Of a stretch of DNA of 64,000 bases, positions 1,756 to 42,978 are shown one piece after another. A program made the position numbers and the translations under genes. The notes beneath the pieces were generated by a model. The model was given only the letters and a program-made list of their open reading frames with translations. It made no database searches and was not told the DNA's origin. Positions within the stretch are counted from its first letter, which is position 1; the number at the start of each line of letters is the position of its first letter. Origin of the DNA: Saccharolobus solfataricus P2 (GTDB taxonomy: Archaea; Thermoproteota; Thermoprotei_A; Sulfolobales; Sulfolobaceae); NCBI RefSeq assembly GCF_000007005.1, contig NC_002754.1. One strand, given 5' to 3'.

Positions 1756-2030
1756 TTGGTTAATCCCTTTATTTCGTCGATATAGTGTGAGGTCATTCCT
1801 CTTATATTTTCAATGGCTTTCAATAAGGCATCTTTAGGAGTTATTGAACCATCAGTTAGTATTTTAACTATTATTTTATCAGATAAAGGATGTGGTTGAT
1901 AATATGAAGCAAAACTTACGCCACTAATTCTCCTCAAGGTACCCGCAATTAAGTTACCTAACGTATGATCCTCTCCTTCTATCTCTAATTCCAAGTAATT
2001 ACTTTCACTTTTTAGTATTCTAATTTCCAC
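1752..2030 (-). CDS. rpoL: RNA polymerase subunit L (Rpo11)
   Basis: [10 protein letters not shown]...YQPHPL motifs. Confidence 0.97.
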
Positions 2031-2589
2031 CTTTCTTCACCATATAAGATCCTATTTTTCGTTGTTCAATATTTCCGCATCTCTGACATTTTAAATTATT
2101 TTCGTCTTGCTTAATCAATAAATATCCACATCTTGAGCATCTAGCGTAAATAACACCAAGATCTTTCATTTTAATGGTCAAAGCCAAGGGAAAAGTGTAT
2201 GAAAGTAATTTAGCTTTAATTACATCTCCGATTTTTATAGCATCTGTTACATTATTAATTTTTTTATTACTTATTTGAGAAATATGTAAGTAAGCTGAAA
2301 TTGGTGACGCAAGACCTCTCTCCTCGATCCCTACTATTGAAACTAGTGCTGAGTCTTCTTTGATAGAATTAACAATGCCAATCACATATTTAGCCTTCTT
2401 CAAATGTTGAAATATAATTTTCTTAAATCCTAGTACGTTACTCTTCCTATTTAGCATATCATAAAAGATCTTTCCTACAACTGCGGCTCTAACTATACCA
2501 TTTTGTTCATACGTACCATCGCCAGTCATAAATTCTTCAATTACTGCTAACTCCTCTCCTGGTAAAGTTAATTCGCCTTGAGTTCTCAC
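2020..2589 (-). CDS. csl4: Exosome RNA-binding subunit Csl4
   Basis: [15 protein letters not shown]-terminus, S1 domain (LHISQIS, GDVIKAK), C-terminal Zn ribbon CSRC..CQRC..EQRK. Confidence 0.93.
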
Positions 2590-2594
2590 TTAGT

Positions 2595-3596
2595 TCACCA
2601 TGGAAAAATATAGGGTTCCAGACTATTATTTATGATCATTTTTGCCTCTCCAGGCGTTAATACTGGTTTTTCATAGTTGTATAGGTCATCTATTGGCAGT
2701 CTAGGACAAGATGTGACTAAAAATACGTCTATATAATTTCTATCTAAATTTCTAAGTATGTCTAGTGTTAATACCTTATTTGTTACTGTAAATACATCAT
2801 AGCCTTTTTCGGTTAACTTATCATAGAAATATTTTATCATGTTTGGTCTATTTTGTCCAACCTTAACCCCTTGTATAATTACCCAACTACGTTTATCTAA
2901 TGCTTGTAATATTTTACCATATCTAACTTTCAGTATCTTCCTAACATCATTTGTTATATCCTCACTTTTCTGTAAATACGGATCAAGTTTTATAGTTGGT
3001 TTGTTTGTAGCTAATCCTAAACCTAAAGCGTGAAATAATCCTCCTGATACAATCACATAAATATCTGCTTCTACTTCAGCAGCTTTATAATCACATCCTA
3101 AAACTTGTCCATCAAACATAAATCTATTAGATGGTTTACCTATAACTATATCGTATCCCTTATCTTCTAAGAAAGACTTAATTTTAGATAATAATCTTAC
3201 ATGTTGTAAAGTTGCCGTTAATGAGATTTTTCTTCCATTATATTTACTGATATCATTTTCTAAAGAATGAAGAGCATTTTCAGAAATATCTAAATTACTT
3301 TCAGCGTTAATAAATATGGTAGGAAACTTGGGATAGTACCACGTATAAGGGGTATGACCGAAGTGAATTATAAGGTCAGCATTTACTTGTTGTGCCTCAT
3401 CCTCTGCTATGTCGCAAGCACCCCAACTAGGCTCACCTGATATTATAAAATTAACGTTAGGTAGTTTTTCCCTTAACTTCTTTACTATATCTATAGAAAA
3501 ATACTTTAATCCTTCAGGAAATTGTAAAAGAACACGTTTCGCGTTCTTTTCACGTATCTCCTTGATTACACGTTCCTCTTCGAAATTATAGCTCAA
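2595..3596 (-). CDS. dph2: Diphthamide biosynthesis radical-SAM-like enzyme Dph2
   Basis: [31 protein letters not shown] (three Fe-S Cys), KPVLTP. Confidence 0.95.
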
Positions 3597-35225: not shown

Positions 35226-36619
35226 TGGATCCTATGTATTATTTACCAATTTTAATACCATCAATTTTTATTTTGTTTTCATCTATATCAGTTTTATTTA
35301 TAGACAATGGTCTTGATGAAAATAGGTTTAGATTATCAGTAATACTTTCTGTAGTATTATTAGGAGTTAGCCTAGCGTTTTTAATATACTCGTGGACAGC
35401 TAGTGTTATAAACTATACTCTATTCTCTAAATCTCTACTTATAGACGTGCCGGGCTATTTCTTTTCAATAACTGTATTTAGTATAGGTATACTTGCTATT
35501 TTATTGAGTAAAGATCATATAATATCTTGGCCTACACGCTCTTCGATGCTGTCATTGATGTTGCTATCTTTACTAGGTCTATTTTATATGTCTTTTGCGA
35601 ACAATATTATCATTGTTCTCACAACTTGGGCAATATCATCAGCTGCAAGTTATGCAATAGCTATGCTTAGAAAGGATTACAAGTCAGTTGATGCTGGTAT
35701 TAAATATCTTATTATGGGGCTTTTATCGAGCTCAATAATGATAATTGGTTTTGCCTCATATCTAATTTCAACTGGTTCATTACTATTTACTACATCTGTG
35801 ATATATCCAAATCTCTTCTTTTTCTCTATATCTTTTATTTCAATAGCATTTTTATTTAAGATTGGAGCATTTCCATTTCAAGCATGGTTGCCAGATGTTT
35901 ACACGGATGCTGATAGAATATCAGTGGCTTTTATTTCAAGTGTGGGTAAGCTTATAGGTATAATTCCTTTATTTAGGGTAGTATATCTATCAGATCCTAA
36001 TATGGTAGAATTGGTTATATTCATAGTCATTTCAGTAGCTAGTATGTTGGTTGGAAATATAACCGCTTTTTCAAGGAGAGATGTTGCAGCAATACTTTCA
36101 TTTAGTTCTATAACTCAAATGGGCTATATCTTAATAGGTTTTGCAATGTTTACAGTATCTCCAGCCATAGCAGTTGTAGGCATTTTAGTACAATCCCTTG
36201 CATATGGAATAGCTCAAGTTGGTCTATTTGGTATAGTGAGTCACGTAGAGAAAGTATCTGGGACTTCTGATATTTCTGGTCTTAGAGGAATATCATCTCA
36301 AGATAAGCCACTAGCTTTTGCAATTGTTGTTCTTATATTAAGTTTACTAGGAATACCGCCAATTTTCGGGTTTTGGGGTAAGTTGTTCTTATTTGAAAGC
36401 TCATTCACATACCCTTGGCTTACTATAATAGCTGTACTTAATAGTGCAATTTCTGCCGGATACTATGTACCTATTGTTAGAGAAGTGTTTAGGGAAGGAG
36501 AATTTGAGGTTATAAAAAGTTCAGAAAGAAACATTGCAGTAGTCTCGGCAATTTTAAGTATAATACTAGGTATAGTTATTCCAATTGTATTTCAGATTTT
36601 GGTGAGTCAGATTGATTAG
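35225..36619 (+). CDS. nuoN: Complex I-like subunit N
   Basis: [32 protein letters not shown]-like, [11 protein letters not shown]; TAATG overlap, GGGGTGA SD. Confidence 0.93.
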
Positions 36620-37646
36620 AATTGCCTTAATTGGAGTAGGTAATGTGGCTTCTGCATTAGTGCAATCTATAGAACTGATTAGAAATGGCAAAGAGATTTA
36701 CGGAATATTAGATCTCCCAATAAGGCCAAATGATATAGAGATAGTAGCGGCTTTCGATATTGACAAGAGGAAAGTTAATAAGAGGCTTAGAGAGGCTATA
36801 TTCACTAAACCAAATGTAGTTGATAAGTATGTAGACGTTAAAAACGATATAATTGTAATGAGAGGTCCTACTCTCGATGGAAGAGTTGGGATTCTTTCAA
36901 ATATTATTGAAGAATCTGAAGAAGAACCTGTTGATATAGTTGACGTTTTAAAGAAAGAGAAGGTAGACGTGGTAGTAAATTTATTACCAACTGGGGCAAC
37001 AAGCGCAAGTAATTTCTATGCTAAGGCTTCCTTAGAGGCTGGTTCTGCTTTCATAAACACTACTCCTTCCCCAACTGCTAAGGAATTTAAAGATCAATTT
37101 ATGGAGAAAAGACTTCCAATCTTAGGCGATGATTTATTAAGTCAAATAGGAGGAACAATAACACATGCTGGTATTATTGAGTTTTTAAAAAGTAGAGGAG
37201 TAAAAGTTCTAAAGTCTTATCAAATAGACATTGCTGGTTCTACAGAAGCTCTCGTAGCCTTGGAAGACTGGAGAAAAGATCTCAAAAAGAGCTTAAAGTC
37301 CTCCTTCATATCTTCTTTTACGAACGACGTTGAAGTTGTAGCGGGGACATCTGATTACGTAGAGTTTCTAAAGGACAGAAGGGTTAGTTATATGGTAATT
37401 GAAGGATTATATGGAATAGGAGTTCCAATAAGAATTGACATTTCTCTGAAAACATACGATTCTTTCAATGCAGTAGCTCCTCTAATAGATCTAATAAGAA
37501 TTGCAAAGCTCTTAGGACGTCATGGTATTGGTGGTGCTGTAAAAGAGGTTTGTTATTACTACTTTAAAGACCCTCCAGAAAAGGCTAAGAGTATTATGGA
37601 TGCTAAAAGATCATTAGATTCCCTTTTAAATAAGCTTTTAGGATAA
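36612..37646 (+). CDS. myo-inositol-1-phosphate synthase family protein with degenerate active-site motifs
   Basis: [53 protein letters not shown]; TTG start coupled to nuoN. Confidence 0.85.
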
Positions 37647-37706
37647 GTCTTATTCTATTTTATTAATGATAAAAGTTTAGAACGAATCTCATCCTTTAAG
37701 GGGTTT

Positions 37707-37760
37707 AGATGATGTGTGAACCCCGGACTGATAAATGATGTGCGCGTGTGAGGACTGATC
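37707..37760 (+). ncRNA. Box C/D 2'-O-methylation guide sRNA
   Basis: C ATGATGT 37709-15; D' guide GTGAACCCCGGA; D' CTGA 37728-31; C' ATGATGT 37735-41; D guide GCGCGTGTGAGGA; D CTGA 37755-58. GC-rich guides in AT-rich intergenic DNA with canonical 12-13 nt spacing. Confidence 0.92.
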
Positions 37761-38874
37761 ATAATTCAATTACCTCCGAGTTTTCAAGTATCTTCTCGTA
37801 ATCAACATTTAGCCTCTCTTCATTCTTTAATATTTCATTAAGATCCTCAGAGGTCCTAGCTTTAGTTGAGATTGCGCAATATTCTGGAAGTTTTATTGAG
37901 TGTTTGTAAGTTCCAATTTTCCTTGCGATGTCAACGATTTCTTCCTTATCAAATCCAATTAGAGGTCTAAAAATAGGATACTTTATCCCATATTCAGTTA
38001 CGTATAAATTAGCCATAGTTTGTGACGATACTTGCGAAAGTGATTCCCCGGTGGTAATCGATTTAGCATTCGTTTTTTCGCACAGCTTTTCAGCCGTTTT
38101 ATACATCACTCTCTTTAACATGACTACACGGCTTCTTCTCTCAACTTGCGATAACTTAATAAACACATCTGTACCCTTTACGATAAATATTTTTAATTTA
38201 TGTCCTCCACTCCATCTTTTAAGCATATTTAATTCTTTTAATACTAACTCCTTATGTAGGTCTCCGCCCAAATTGAAGTTTAAAATAATGGGAACTGACC
38301 CTCTTTTCATCATCATCCATGTGGCTACAGGTGAATCAATGCCACCAGAAAACAACACAACTGTCTTCCCTGCAACACCGACCGGTAAACCCTTCGGTCC
38401 TTTAATAACCTTATGATAGAAGTACGTCATCTCATTTCTAATTTCTATAAATATCTCAACTTCAGGGTTCTCTAGATCTACTCCTTTAGAATATGGATAT
38501 AAAGCTTCACCAGCTCTTCTTTCAACATCTAGGCTAGTAAAACTGTGAGATCCTATTCTTTTTGCTCTTACTGCGAAAATTTTGCCTTTAACTATCTCCG
38601 CAAAAATTTCTTTAGCTTTGTTAACTATATCTTCCAAATTATTTGATTTAATTGCTATTACTGGCGAGAAAGACGATATACCGAATACCTCGCTAAGTGC
38701 CTCTATGTTCGCGTTATTATCGTTAACTTCTAATAGGATTACTCCTTGTGATCTCCATATTTTCCCTCCTCCTATAGTATTTCTTATATTATTGATTAAT
38801 GTATACTCAAAATTCCTCCTAGACCTTGGCGATTTAAGTGCAATTTCACCTGATGGTCTTATAATTACTAACAT
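37759..38874 (-). CDS. thiI: tRNA 4-thiouridine synthase ThiI (THUMP + PP-loop, no rhodanese domain)
   Basis: GEIALKS, FAVRAKR THUMP, LFSGGIDSPVA, TGESLSQVSSQT, RPLIGFDKEEI, PEYC. Confidence 0.95.
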   Translation of the reverse strand: MLVIIRPSGEIALKSPRSRRNFEYTLINNIRNTIGGGKIWRSQGVILLEVNDNNANIEALSEVFGISSFSPVIAIKSNNLEDIVNKAKEIFAEIVKGKIFAVRAKRIGSHSFTSLDVERRAGEALYPYSKGVDLENPEVEIFIEIRNEMTYFYHKVIKGPKGLPVGVAGKTVVLFSGGIDSPVATWMMMKRGSVPIILNFNLGGDLHKELVLKELNMLKRWSGGHKLKIFIVKGTDVFIKLSQVERRSRVVMLKRVMYKTAEKLCEKTNAKSITTGESLSQVSSQTMANLYVTEYGIKYPIFRPLIGFDKEEIVDIARKIGTYKHSIKLPEYCAISTKARTSEDLNEILKNEERLNVDYEKILENSEVIEL

Positions 38875-39064
38875 GATCCCTCACTCTCATGTAGTGCATA
38901 AATAGTTGTATTGCGTGCCTACAAAATTTTTGTCCGCATTCGCACTCAGAATAAATTATTTTAAAGCCATCAATTTTTATCCTTACCTTATAGTACCCTG
39001 CTACACATCTAGCACCCACAAAGCCTTCTATGAGATTATTATTAATGGATGTTATAATTATCAT
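38846..39064 (-). CDS. Small SWIM zinc-finger protein
   Basis: YKVRI....SECECGQKFCRHA (CxCxnCxH); overlaps thiI start by 29 nt. Confidence 0.75.
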   Translation of the reverse strand: MIIITSINNNLIEGFVGARCVAGYYKVRIKIDGFKIIYSECECGQKFCRHAIQLFMHYMRVRDHVSNYKTIR

Positions 39065-42643: not shown

Positions 42644-42890
42644 GATATATACTTTTCAGTTCAAATTTAAAATTAAGTACCATGTAAGTATAGTCTACTT
42701 ATACATTTCAGTATCAGTAATTATTATAATTACAGTTTTATGTATTTTTCACATATCACTAGAGTTCGATATTGCTAAATAAAAGATTCGTACTATATTA
42801 TGGAGATTTTCACAGCAGAAAGTAATAAGCTCTGGCTTCCTTCACCTTAAAAGGTTAAGGTTTCAGTTTTAAACACATTATGAGAATGTG

Positions 42891-42978
42891 CGGACCCGGC
42901 GGGATTCGAACCCGCGACCACCGGCTTTCTTCCGAAAGTTAGGAGGCCGGCGCTCCATCCTGGCTGAGCTACGGGTCC
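42891..42978 (-). tRNA. tRNA-Arg(CCT) with 13-nt intron at 37/38 (intron 42927-42939); CCA not encoded
   Basis: GGACCCGTAGCTCAGCCAGGATGGAGCGCCGGCCT-CCT-A-[ACTTTCGGAAGAA]-AGCCGGTGGTCGCGGGTTCGAATCCCGCCGGGTCCG. Confidence 0.97.

Follow-up and report, generated by a model that had tools for sequence, protein, structure and literature searches.

The window analysed here, a 64,000-nt stretch of the chromosome of Saccharolobus solfataricus P2 (contig NC_002754.1), contains between an ino1-like gene and thiI a short element with the appearance of an archaeal box C/D sRNA, and the question raised by this locus is which RNA, and which of its nucleotides, the two guides of the element would select for 2'-O-methylation. 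A sequence-only reading of the window had answered that both guides are complements of tRNA-Val(CAC), with C34 and G51 as the predicted sites. In the present analysis the sRNA and the two sites are retained and the tRNA is replaced: the element is very likely a double guide, predicted to direct 2'-O-methylation of C34 and G51 in the elongator pre-tRNA-Met(CAU).

By the features of its sequence, the stretch 37709–37758 is a genuine box C/D sRNA (Table 1). A RUGAUGA-like C box lies near the 5' end and a CUGA D box near the 3' end, internal D' and C' boxes are present, and spacers of 12 and 13 nt and a loop of 3 nt give a compact C-D'-C'-D core of 50 nt, in line with the spacers of about 12 nt, the short loop and the length class of about 50–60 nt that are usual in Archaea. 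Archaeal guides form at least 9–10 bp with their targets, the nucleotide at N+5 included; here both guides form 11 bp with the target described below, and in both duplexes the N+5 nucleotide is Watson-Crick paired. A relaxed C-D'-C'-D pattern has a single match in the 64-kb window and none in each of 200 shuffled versions of it, so that the clean layout claimed by the sequence-only reading is borne out, and the limits it gave (37707–37760) are correct within 2 nt. Because the RNA-seq ends of the S. acidocaldarius ortholog, Sac-sR18, fall 5 nt outside the boxes, the mature sRNA probably extends about 5 nt beyond the core on each side, roughly from 37704 to 37763. A check of Rfam and of published lists for an earlier description, which that reading had proposed, gave a divided answer: no Rfam family reaches its gathering threshold at the sRNA, where RF01141 (sR18) scores 25.9 bits and snoPyro_CD 24.1 bits against a cutoff of 45 each and the sub-threshold matches are to several generic archaeal C/D families, while the published lists do hold the ortholog Sac-sR18.

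Table 1. Features of the sRNA locus (positions in the window)
Feature	Position	Strand	Remarks
Box C/D sRNA core	37709..37758	+	S. solfataricus ortholog of Sac-sR18
C box AUGAUGU	37709..37715	+	Consensus RUGAUGA, last A replaced by U
D' guide GUGAACCCCGGA	37716..37727	+	Predicted to pair with U47–A57 of tRNA-Met; N+5 is G51
D' box CUGA	37728..37731	+	
D'-C' loop UAA, 3 nt	37732..37734	+	
C' box AUGAUGU	37735..37741	+	
D guide GCGCGUGUGAGGA	37742..37754	+	Predicted to pair with C32–A37 and intron nt 1–5 of pre-tRNA-Met; N+5 is C34
D box CUGA	37755..37758	+	Invariant in 8 species
thiI, tRNA 4-thiouridine synthase	37759..38874	–	ORF; Pfam ThiI, THUMP, ThiI_fer; homologs
Myo-inositol-1-phosphate synthase-like gene (ino1)	36612..37646	+	ORF; Pfam; upstream same-strand neighbour

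As for the neighbours, it is possible that the ino1-like gene and the sRNA are co-transcribed. The thiI gene is a convergent neighbour that stands outside the guide system, and its stop codon (37759–37761, – strand) follows directly upon the D box, as had been noticed before. The heptanucleotide CUGAUCA, which consists of the D box and the adjoining UCA (37755–37761), is retained in S. acidocaldarius, where no thiI stop codon comes after it, and for this reason the UCA may belong to the 3' tail of the sRNA and be conserved not merely as the complement of the thiI stop codon. At the other end of thiI, a 72-codon ORF without a Pfam match (38846–39064, – strand) overlaps the start of the gene; the same ORF is called in the loci of relatives too (L001–L003, 2311–2529).

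The loci of relatives were obtained via thiI, and eight sRNA sequences, that of S. solfataricus and those of seven other Sulfolobales, were aligned. Six of the seven orthologs occupy the ino1/thiI spacer (Sulfolobus sp. E5-1-F, a further Saccharolobus assembly, S. tengchongensis, Sulfolobus sp. A20, Sulfurisphaera javensis and Stygiolobus caldivivus), the one of Sulfurisphaera overlapping the 3' end of the upstream, ino1-like gene. The seventh is that of S. acidocaldarius, whose ino1/thiI spacer holds no sRNA and whose ortholog is found about 1.1 kb upstream of thiI on the same strand. Across the eight species the UGAUG of the C box and the D' guide core GAACCCCGG do not vary and the D guide core is conserved as CGU(G/A)UGAG, whereas the guide ends and the flanks are variable; the D' box is degenerate (UUGA or UAGA) in S. 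acidocaldarius, Stygiolobus and Sulfurisphaera. The D guide of Stygiolobus has an A at the position opposite nucleotide 36 at which the remaining guides (7 of 8) have a G, and its complement, CUCAUAC, contains a CAU anticodon; this A suits CAU and is a mismatch to CAC. The published Sac-sR18 has the same sequence as the S. acidocaldarius ortholog, and Additional file 1 of the catalogue gives 17,730 RNA-seq reads for it (Dennis et al., 2015; PMC4644070). Sac-sR18 is in this sense highly expressed in its own species. In S. acidocaldarius sR18 has a divergent neighbour at a distance of about 80 nt, the likewise published C/D sRNA Sac-sR131 (L005, 1169–1225, – strand), with which it makes up a small sRNA gene pair; no counterpart of Sac-sR131 is seen beside the S. 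solfataricus sRNA.

The complements of the two guides are those that the sequence-only reading had given, UCCUCACACGCGC and UCCGGGGUUCAC, and the N+5 rule leads, as it had stated, to the C that precedes "AC" and to the second G of GGGG, which correspond to the wobble position C34 and to G51 of a tRNA. Nearly half of the tRNA genes of Sulfolobales have introns. Since such introns are common and since the Stygiolobus complement reads CAU, the search was turned to intron-containing tRNA(CAU) genes. A metagenome scan in which an insert of 8–38 nt was permitted after CTCAYA recovered many hot-spring crenarchaeal intron-containing tRNA(CAU) genes with both sites, all of one type that can be written as GCCGCCGUAGCUCAGCCUGGUUAGAGCGCCGGA-CUCAUA-[intron]-AUCCGG-UUGUC-CGGGG-UUCAAAU-CCCCG-CGGCGGCA. 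In cultured species the tRNA-Met gene was reached through the HMG-CoA synthase gene that adjoins it. In S. solfataricus P2 (AE006641) and 98/2 it has the intron cgcguaauauccgggaa and carries both CUCAUA, followed directly by the intron start cgcgu..., and UCCGGGGUUCAA; both sites lie in this pre-tRNA-Met gene, and the claim that both guides are complements of a single tRNA stands with the elongator tRNA-Met(CAU) in the place of tRNA-Val. The corresponding introns are cgguaauguaaaucugggau in S. acidocaldarius and cgguaaggggac in S. tokodaii, and the same gene type is present in three other Saccharolobus genomes. Stygiolobus is without a guide-target pair from the same species because its tRNA-Met does not adjoin HMG-CoA synthase.

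Archaea have three tRNAs with a CAU anticodon, and the isotype of the candidate had therefore to be decided. Rfam recognizes the genes as tRNA with about 61 bits (61.4 in S. solfataricus) and with 12–20 extra bases in the anticodon loop, and ARAGORN, when introns are permitted, calls them tRNA-Met(cat). The candidate has a G1-C72 pair and the anticodon stem CCGGA/UCCGG, and it is without the G29–31/C39–41 pairs; the initiator tRNA is ruled out by these characters. The sequenced elongator tRNA-Met of H. volcanii (GCCCGGG... and CCGCA-CUCmAUt6AA-PsiGCGG) shares with the candidate the acceptor start GCC and the pair A31-U39, while the tRNA-Ile2 of H. volcanii, which resembles Ile1 and has GGGCC... 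and G31-C39, is unlike it. The RNase fragments reported for the elongator tRNA-Met of P. furiosus imply the same U47-C48-C49-GGGG-U54 segment. By sequence resemblance, as distinct from aminoacylation, the target tRNA is thus of the elongator Met type. The isotype call has to be read as one of resemblance because another intron-containing gene of S. solfataricus, SSOt11, with a 25-nt intron, is also annotated as "tRNA-Met".

Several further observations concern these and other tRNA genes. The window itself has two intron-containing tRNA genes, at 995–1085 and at 42890–42978 (both on the – strand), with Rfam scores of 55 and 56.7 bits and with 17 and 15 loop bases unshown in the cmscan alignment; their anticodon loops, CUUCU and CUCCU, read as Arg(UCU) and Arg(CCU), and ARAGORN with its default settings wrongly takes both for tRNA-Pyl(cta). 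In S. tokodaii (L324) the elongator tRNA-Met gene (3370–3456) has a gene for a tyrosine-recombinase integrase (1996–3237, – strand) directly beside it, and in two hot-spring contigs (L224 and L241) a second copy of the 3' half of tRNA-Met, UCCGGUUGUCCGGGGUUCAAAUCCCCGCGGCGGCA, lies about 1.2 kb away from the intact gene; the adjoining integrase and the duplicated half suggest that mobile elements integrate at tRNA-Met. The second "CTCACA..." match in the same two contigs, considered as a tRNA-Val, is instead this duplicated half, an att-like remnant. An intron-containing tRNA(CAU) with GGUCCGGGGUUCAAGUCCCCG occurs in other crenarchaeal contigs, of about 54% GC. Finally, in three Saccharolobus-like contigs (L218, L273 and L296; 90% identity in HMG-CoA synthase) the tRNA-Met intron starts with gcggac..., and not with cgcg or cgg, a junction that would pair with none of the eight aligned guides; the sRNA of these organisms, if present, should have a different 5' guide part.

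In S. solfataricus the D' guide forms 11 Watson-Crick bp with its tRNA-Met segment (–21.5 kcal/mol, N+5 at G51), and the D guide 11 bp (–19.6 kcal/mol, N+5 at C34) with C32 U33 C34 A35 U36 A37 and the intron nucleotides c g c g u, the D duplex containing two G.U pairs, at U36 and at the last position. The bases CGCG, which the sequence-only reading had taken for C38 and the 3' strand of the anticodon stem, are in the tRNA-Met gene the start of the intron. In spliced tRNA-Met the pairing of the D guide at the site falls to 6 bp, and its best duplex anywhere in the molecule has only –12.1 kcal/mol; because 6 bp remain after splicing, the D guide would act solely on the unspliced precursor. The pairing is found in the relatives as well: S. 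acidocaldarius sR18 forms 10 bp (D) and 9 bp (D') with its own tRNA-Met, the Sulfurisphaera guide pairs equivalently with S. tokodaii tRNA-Met, and the Stygiolobus guide forms 10 Watson-Crick bp with the same S. tokodaii tRNA-Met, used as a proxy. In seven of the eight guides U36 faces a G, which places a G.U pair two positions from the target nucleotide, and in most species guide positions 1–2, beside box D, are unpaired.

A connection between the guide and the intron is seen in the comparison of genera. In Saccharolobus the guide positions 11/12 are G,C and face C,G at intron nucleotides 3/4, whereas in the other genera they are C,G and face G,U, so that one of the two changes is fully compensated and the other turns a G-C pair into a G.U pair. 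In these sequences the 5' part of the D guide covaries with the 5' end of the tRNA-Met intron, and the tRNA segments that do not vary, C48–C56 and C32–A37 plus "cg", are exactly those that face the invariant guide cores. Under a chance model with 5 Mb of random sequence at 65% GC and about 8.5 kb of stable RNA per cell, an 11-bp Watson-Crick match to the D' guide has a frequency of 1.4e-6 per nt, and an 11-bp match to the D guide with at most two G.U pairs one of 3.2e-5 per nt. The D match taken alone is not rare genome-wide, and comparable ones occur within genes of the window; both matches in one 92-nt RNA are expected about 3e-5 times, a figure in which neither the positions of the targets (a wobble base and a T stem) nor the covariation is counted. 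About 60 low-GC contigs (26–38% GC; L197–L316, e.g., L314, 111–187) have a tRNA-Val(UAC) in which the variable loop and the T arm, AUCCGGGGUUCAAAUCCCCG, agree with the D' target, and for this reason the T arm recognized by the D' guide is not unique to tRNA-Met across archaea.

Three other explanations of the sRNA have to be weighed against this one. In the reading with which the question opened, the D guide directs Cm34 of tRNA-Val(CAC) through the anticodon loop and the 3' stem, with this tRNA as its sole target or alongside pre-tRNA-Met, and this requires CUCACACGCG in the S. solfataricus tRNA-Val(CAC). The inference looked sound because many bacteria, and humans too, have the perfect complement of the D guide, CCUCACACGCG, as the anticodon arm of their tRNA-Val(CAC); moreover, the G opposite base 36 in 7 of 8 guides can pair with C36 (Val) as well as with U36 (Met), and Pyrobaculum sR45 is a predicted C34 guide for tRNA-Val. 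It is nevertheless unlikely, since a scan of 185,579 genomes contained no gene in which CTCACACGCG is followed within 3–10 nt by the D' target TCCGGGGTTCA, so that a Val tRNA cannot carry both of the sites that are present in tRNA-Met(CAU). Against it stand also the A of the Stygiolobus guide, which mismatches C36 of Val, and the covariation described above, as the guide 5' part tracks the tRNA-Met intron between genera and the Val anticodon stem would need identical changes. The tRNA-Val(CAC) of H. volcanii carries no modification at C34, and its arm is UUCACACGGAG. A scan for GCGCCTCAYA...CGCGY...GTTCRANNC returned, among the at least 120 matches listed, bacterial tRNA-Val(CAC) genes and GC-rich chance matches and none from Sulfolobales, the scans of viral contigs gave phage or bacterial tRNAs only, and among the loci fetched there is a single Val(CAC), from an organism of 54% GC. 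The C38–G41 stem of tRNA-Val(CAC) is CGCG in many organisms, and the D guide might read two tRNAs, the CAU of pre-tRNA-Met through the G.U pair and the intron CGCG, and the CAC of tRNA-Val through a G-C pair and the C38–G41 stem. There is a small chance that the D guide does serve two tRNAs in this way and, separately, that in some species the D' guide acts on 23S G963 as well as on tRNA-Met G51; in the former case the wobble ribose of both tRNAs would be under the control of a single guide, the intron of tRNA-Met would imitate the anticodon stem of Val, and the G opposite position 36 would be kept for both.

A further candidate is the helix 35 region of 23S rRNA, for which the supplementary table of the published catalogue lists Sac-sR18 as a double guide, with G963 as the D' target and G970* as the D target in the alignment numbering used there (Dennis et al., 2015; PMC4644070). 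The comparison was made with the S. acidocaldarius 23S rRNA of the same supplement as a proxy for that of S. solfataricus. The S. acidocaldarius D' guide, CAGAACCCC, does form 9 Watson-Crick bp with GGGGUUCUG of 23S, a number equal to that on tRNA-Met; the S. solfataricus D' guide, however, forms with the S. acidocaldarius 23S only 7 bp and –13.9 kcal/mol, against –21.5 kcal/mol for tRNA-Met, and the invariant GG beside box D' in the eight species faces U and A in 23S and C48 and C49 in tRNA-Met. The D duplex on 23S has a G:G mismatch at the N+5 nucleotide and two G.U pairs, which account for the asterisk that the authors put on G970*, and the two proposed sites overlap each other by 5 nt. The catalogue, besides, was searched against rRNA only, with tRNA matches not compiled (Dennis et al., 2015; PMC4644070). 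As the function of the sRNA as a whole, the 23S assignment is quite improbable; an rRNA target of the D' guide in some species is possible, and would leave the conservation of the guides unexplained. An action as an antisense regulator, or an origin as a by-product, of the mRNAs ending here (the 3' end of thiI or the 3' UTR of ino1), with the tRNA matches incidental, is suggested by the D box that abuts the thiI stop codon and by the overlap of the Sulfurisphaera sRNA with the 3' end of the upstream gene. This can be considered highly improbable: the overlap with thiI, from which the sequence-only reading had concluded that the sRNA is antisense to that mRNA, is a few nucleotides at most, the arrangement is not kept in S. 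acidocaldarius, where an sRNA with the same guides sits elsewhere, the flanks diverge around guide cores that do not change, and both guides would meet C34 and G51 of one tRNA by chance at the very low expectation given above.

Returning to the guidance of C34 and G51 in pre-tRNA-Met, the following course of events can be proposed. The sRNA would assemble with L7Ae, Nop5 and fibrillarin; its D guide would span the 5' exon-intron junction and set the wobble C34 five nucleotides from box D, to give Cm34, and its D' guide would bind the variable loop and the T arm and set G51 five nucleotides from box D', to give Gm51. Since the D duplex requires the intron, Cm34 would have to be formed before splicing. 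Both target regions are base-paired in the folded tRNA, so that access of the guides would need an unfolded precursor. In addition, a conserved GGG close to the intron's 3' end offers C32-U33-C34 a partner, and their pairing would give the central helix of the BHB motif recognized in splicing, as in H. volcanii; because C34 lies in this helix, guide binding and recognition by the endonuclease would be mutually exclusive. The sequence-only reading had held that the D target must lie 5' of the D' target for both guides to engage one tRNA; such a need is not established, and the published double guides more often have the D target on the 3' side of the D' target. In a survey of S. acidocaldarius tRNAs the fragments of Table S1 give neither Cm34 nor Gm51 for elongator tRNA-Met, the "Met CAU" fragments listed there, with Um51, come from a different CAU tRNA, and Nm50 and Nm51 are widespread in the tRNAs of this species (Wolff et al., 2020; PMC7668247). 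A guide for G51 of tRNA-Met was not found in the available literature, and a literature search with the guide and target strings returned nothing relevant.

What is new in this locus is the re-assigned target, the co-evolution of guide and intron, and the second guide; the sRNA itself is already known from the catalogue of the sister species S. acidocaldarius. The correction of the target from Val to Met probably applies to the published, rRNA-only assignment of Sac-sR18 too, and it extends the predicted intron-dependent, RNA-guided formation of Cm34 in elongator tRNA-Met from Euryarchaeota to Sulfolobales. The presumed role of Cm34 is to prevent C34 from misreading AUA. A tRNA intron whose 5' end co-evolves with a trans-acting guide offers one concrete reason to keep the intron, and the D' guide is a predicted guide for the poorly explained T-stem ribose methylations of Sulfolobus tRNAs. 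More generally, target searches restricted to rRNA or to spliced tRNAs overlook guides of this type.

The closest relative among known guides is Sac-sR18 itself, which agrees with the S. solfataricus sRNA in the order of the boxes, in the guide cores GAACCCCGG and CGUGUGAG and in the linkage to thiI, and differs from it in box variants, in the guide ends and in its location, which is upstream of thiI and outside the ino1/thiI spacer; the targets published for it are G963/G970* of 23S and not tRNA-Met. A guide for elongator tRNA-Met from Haloferax, sR-tMet, has reportedly been demonstrated by Joardar et al. (2011). The haloarchaeal sR-tMet was predicted in Additional file 5 of Grosjean et al. 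(2008; PMC2584109), and the D guide of the Haloferax RNA, GCCCUAUGAGUG, bridges the exon-intron junction of elongator pre-tRNA-Met by pairing with CACU-Cm-AUAggg. The likeness to the S. solfataricus sRNA consists in a D guide that spans the 5' exon-intron junction and has C34 at N+5, and in the core ...UAUGAG..., which matches GUAUGAG or GUGUGAG of the Sulfolobales guides; in S. solfataricus, too, the predicted duplex lies over the 5' junction and its target is an elongator tRNA-Met. Unlike the compact Sulfolobales sRNA, sR-tMet is about 62–75 nt long, with a long D'-C' segment, degenerate boxes (UGACGA, CCGA) and a D' guide that is no T-arm complement, so that the architecture differs and no homology is detectable beyond the guide core, which is dictated by the target. 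In Pyrococcus a box C/D sRNA for C34 of elongator tRNA-Met has been described (Clouet d'Orval et al., 2001, as cited in PMC7994747); compared by its description only, it is likewise an archaeal C/D guide for the wobble ribose of this tRNA, and it differs in that a second, T-stem guide is not reported for it. Other C/D guides of Sulfolobus direct methylation to C50 of tRNA-Gly(CCC) and to U34 and G18 of tRNA-Gln, as cited in Wolff et al. (2020; PMC7668247), and they share with the S. solfataricus sRNA the 5' strand of the T stem as a place of ribose methylation and the two sites per tRNA, whereas the tRNAs and positions are others, the S. solfataricus pair being C34, at the intron junction, and G51; in Pyrobaculum, dual guides on one tRNA are described as rare. 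Judged from the predicted duplexes, the mechanism is the same as that of Haloferax sR-tMet and of the Pyrococcus guide, and the putative G51 guide is an addition in Sulfolobales.
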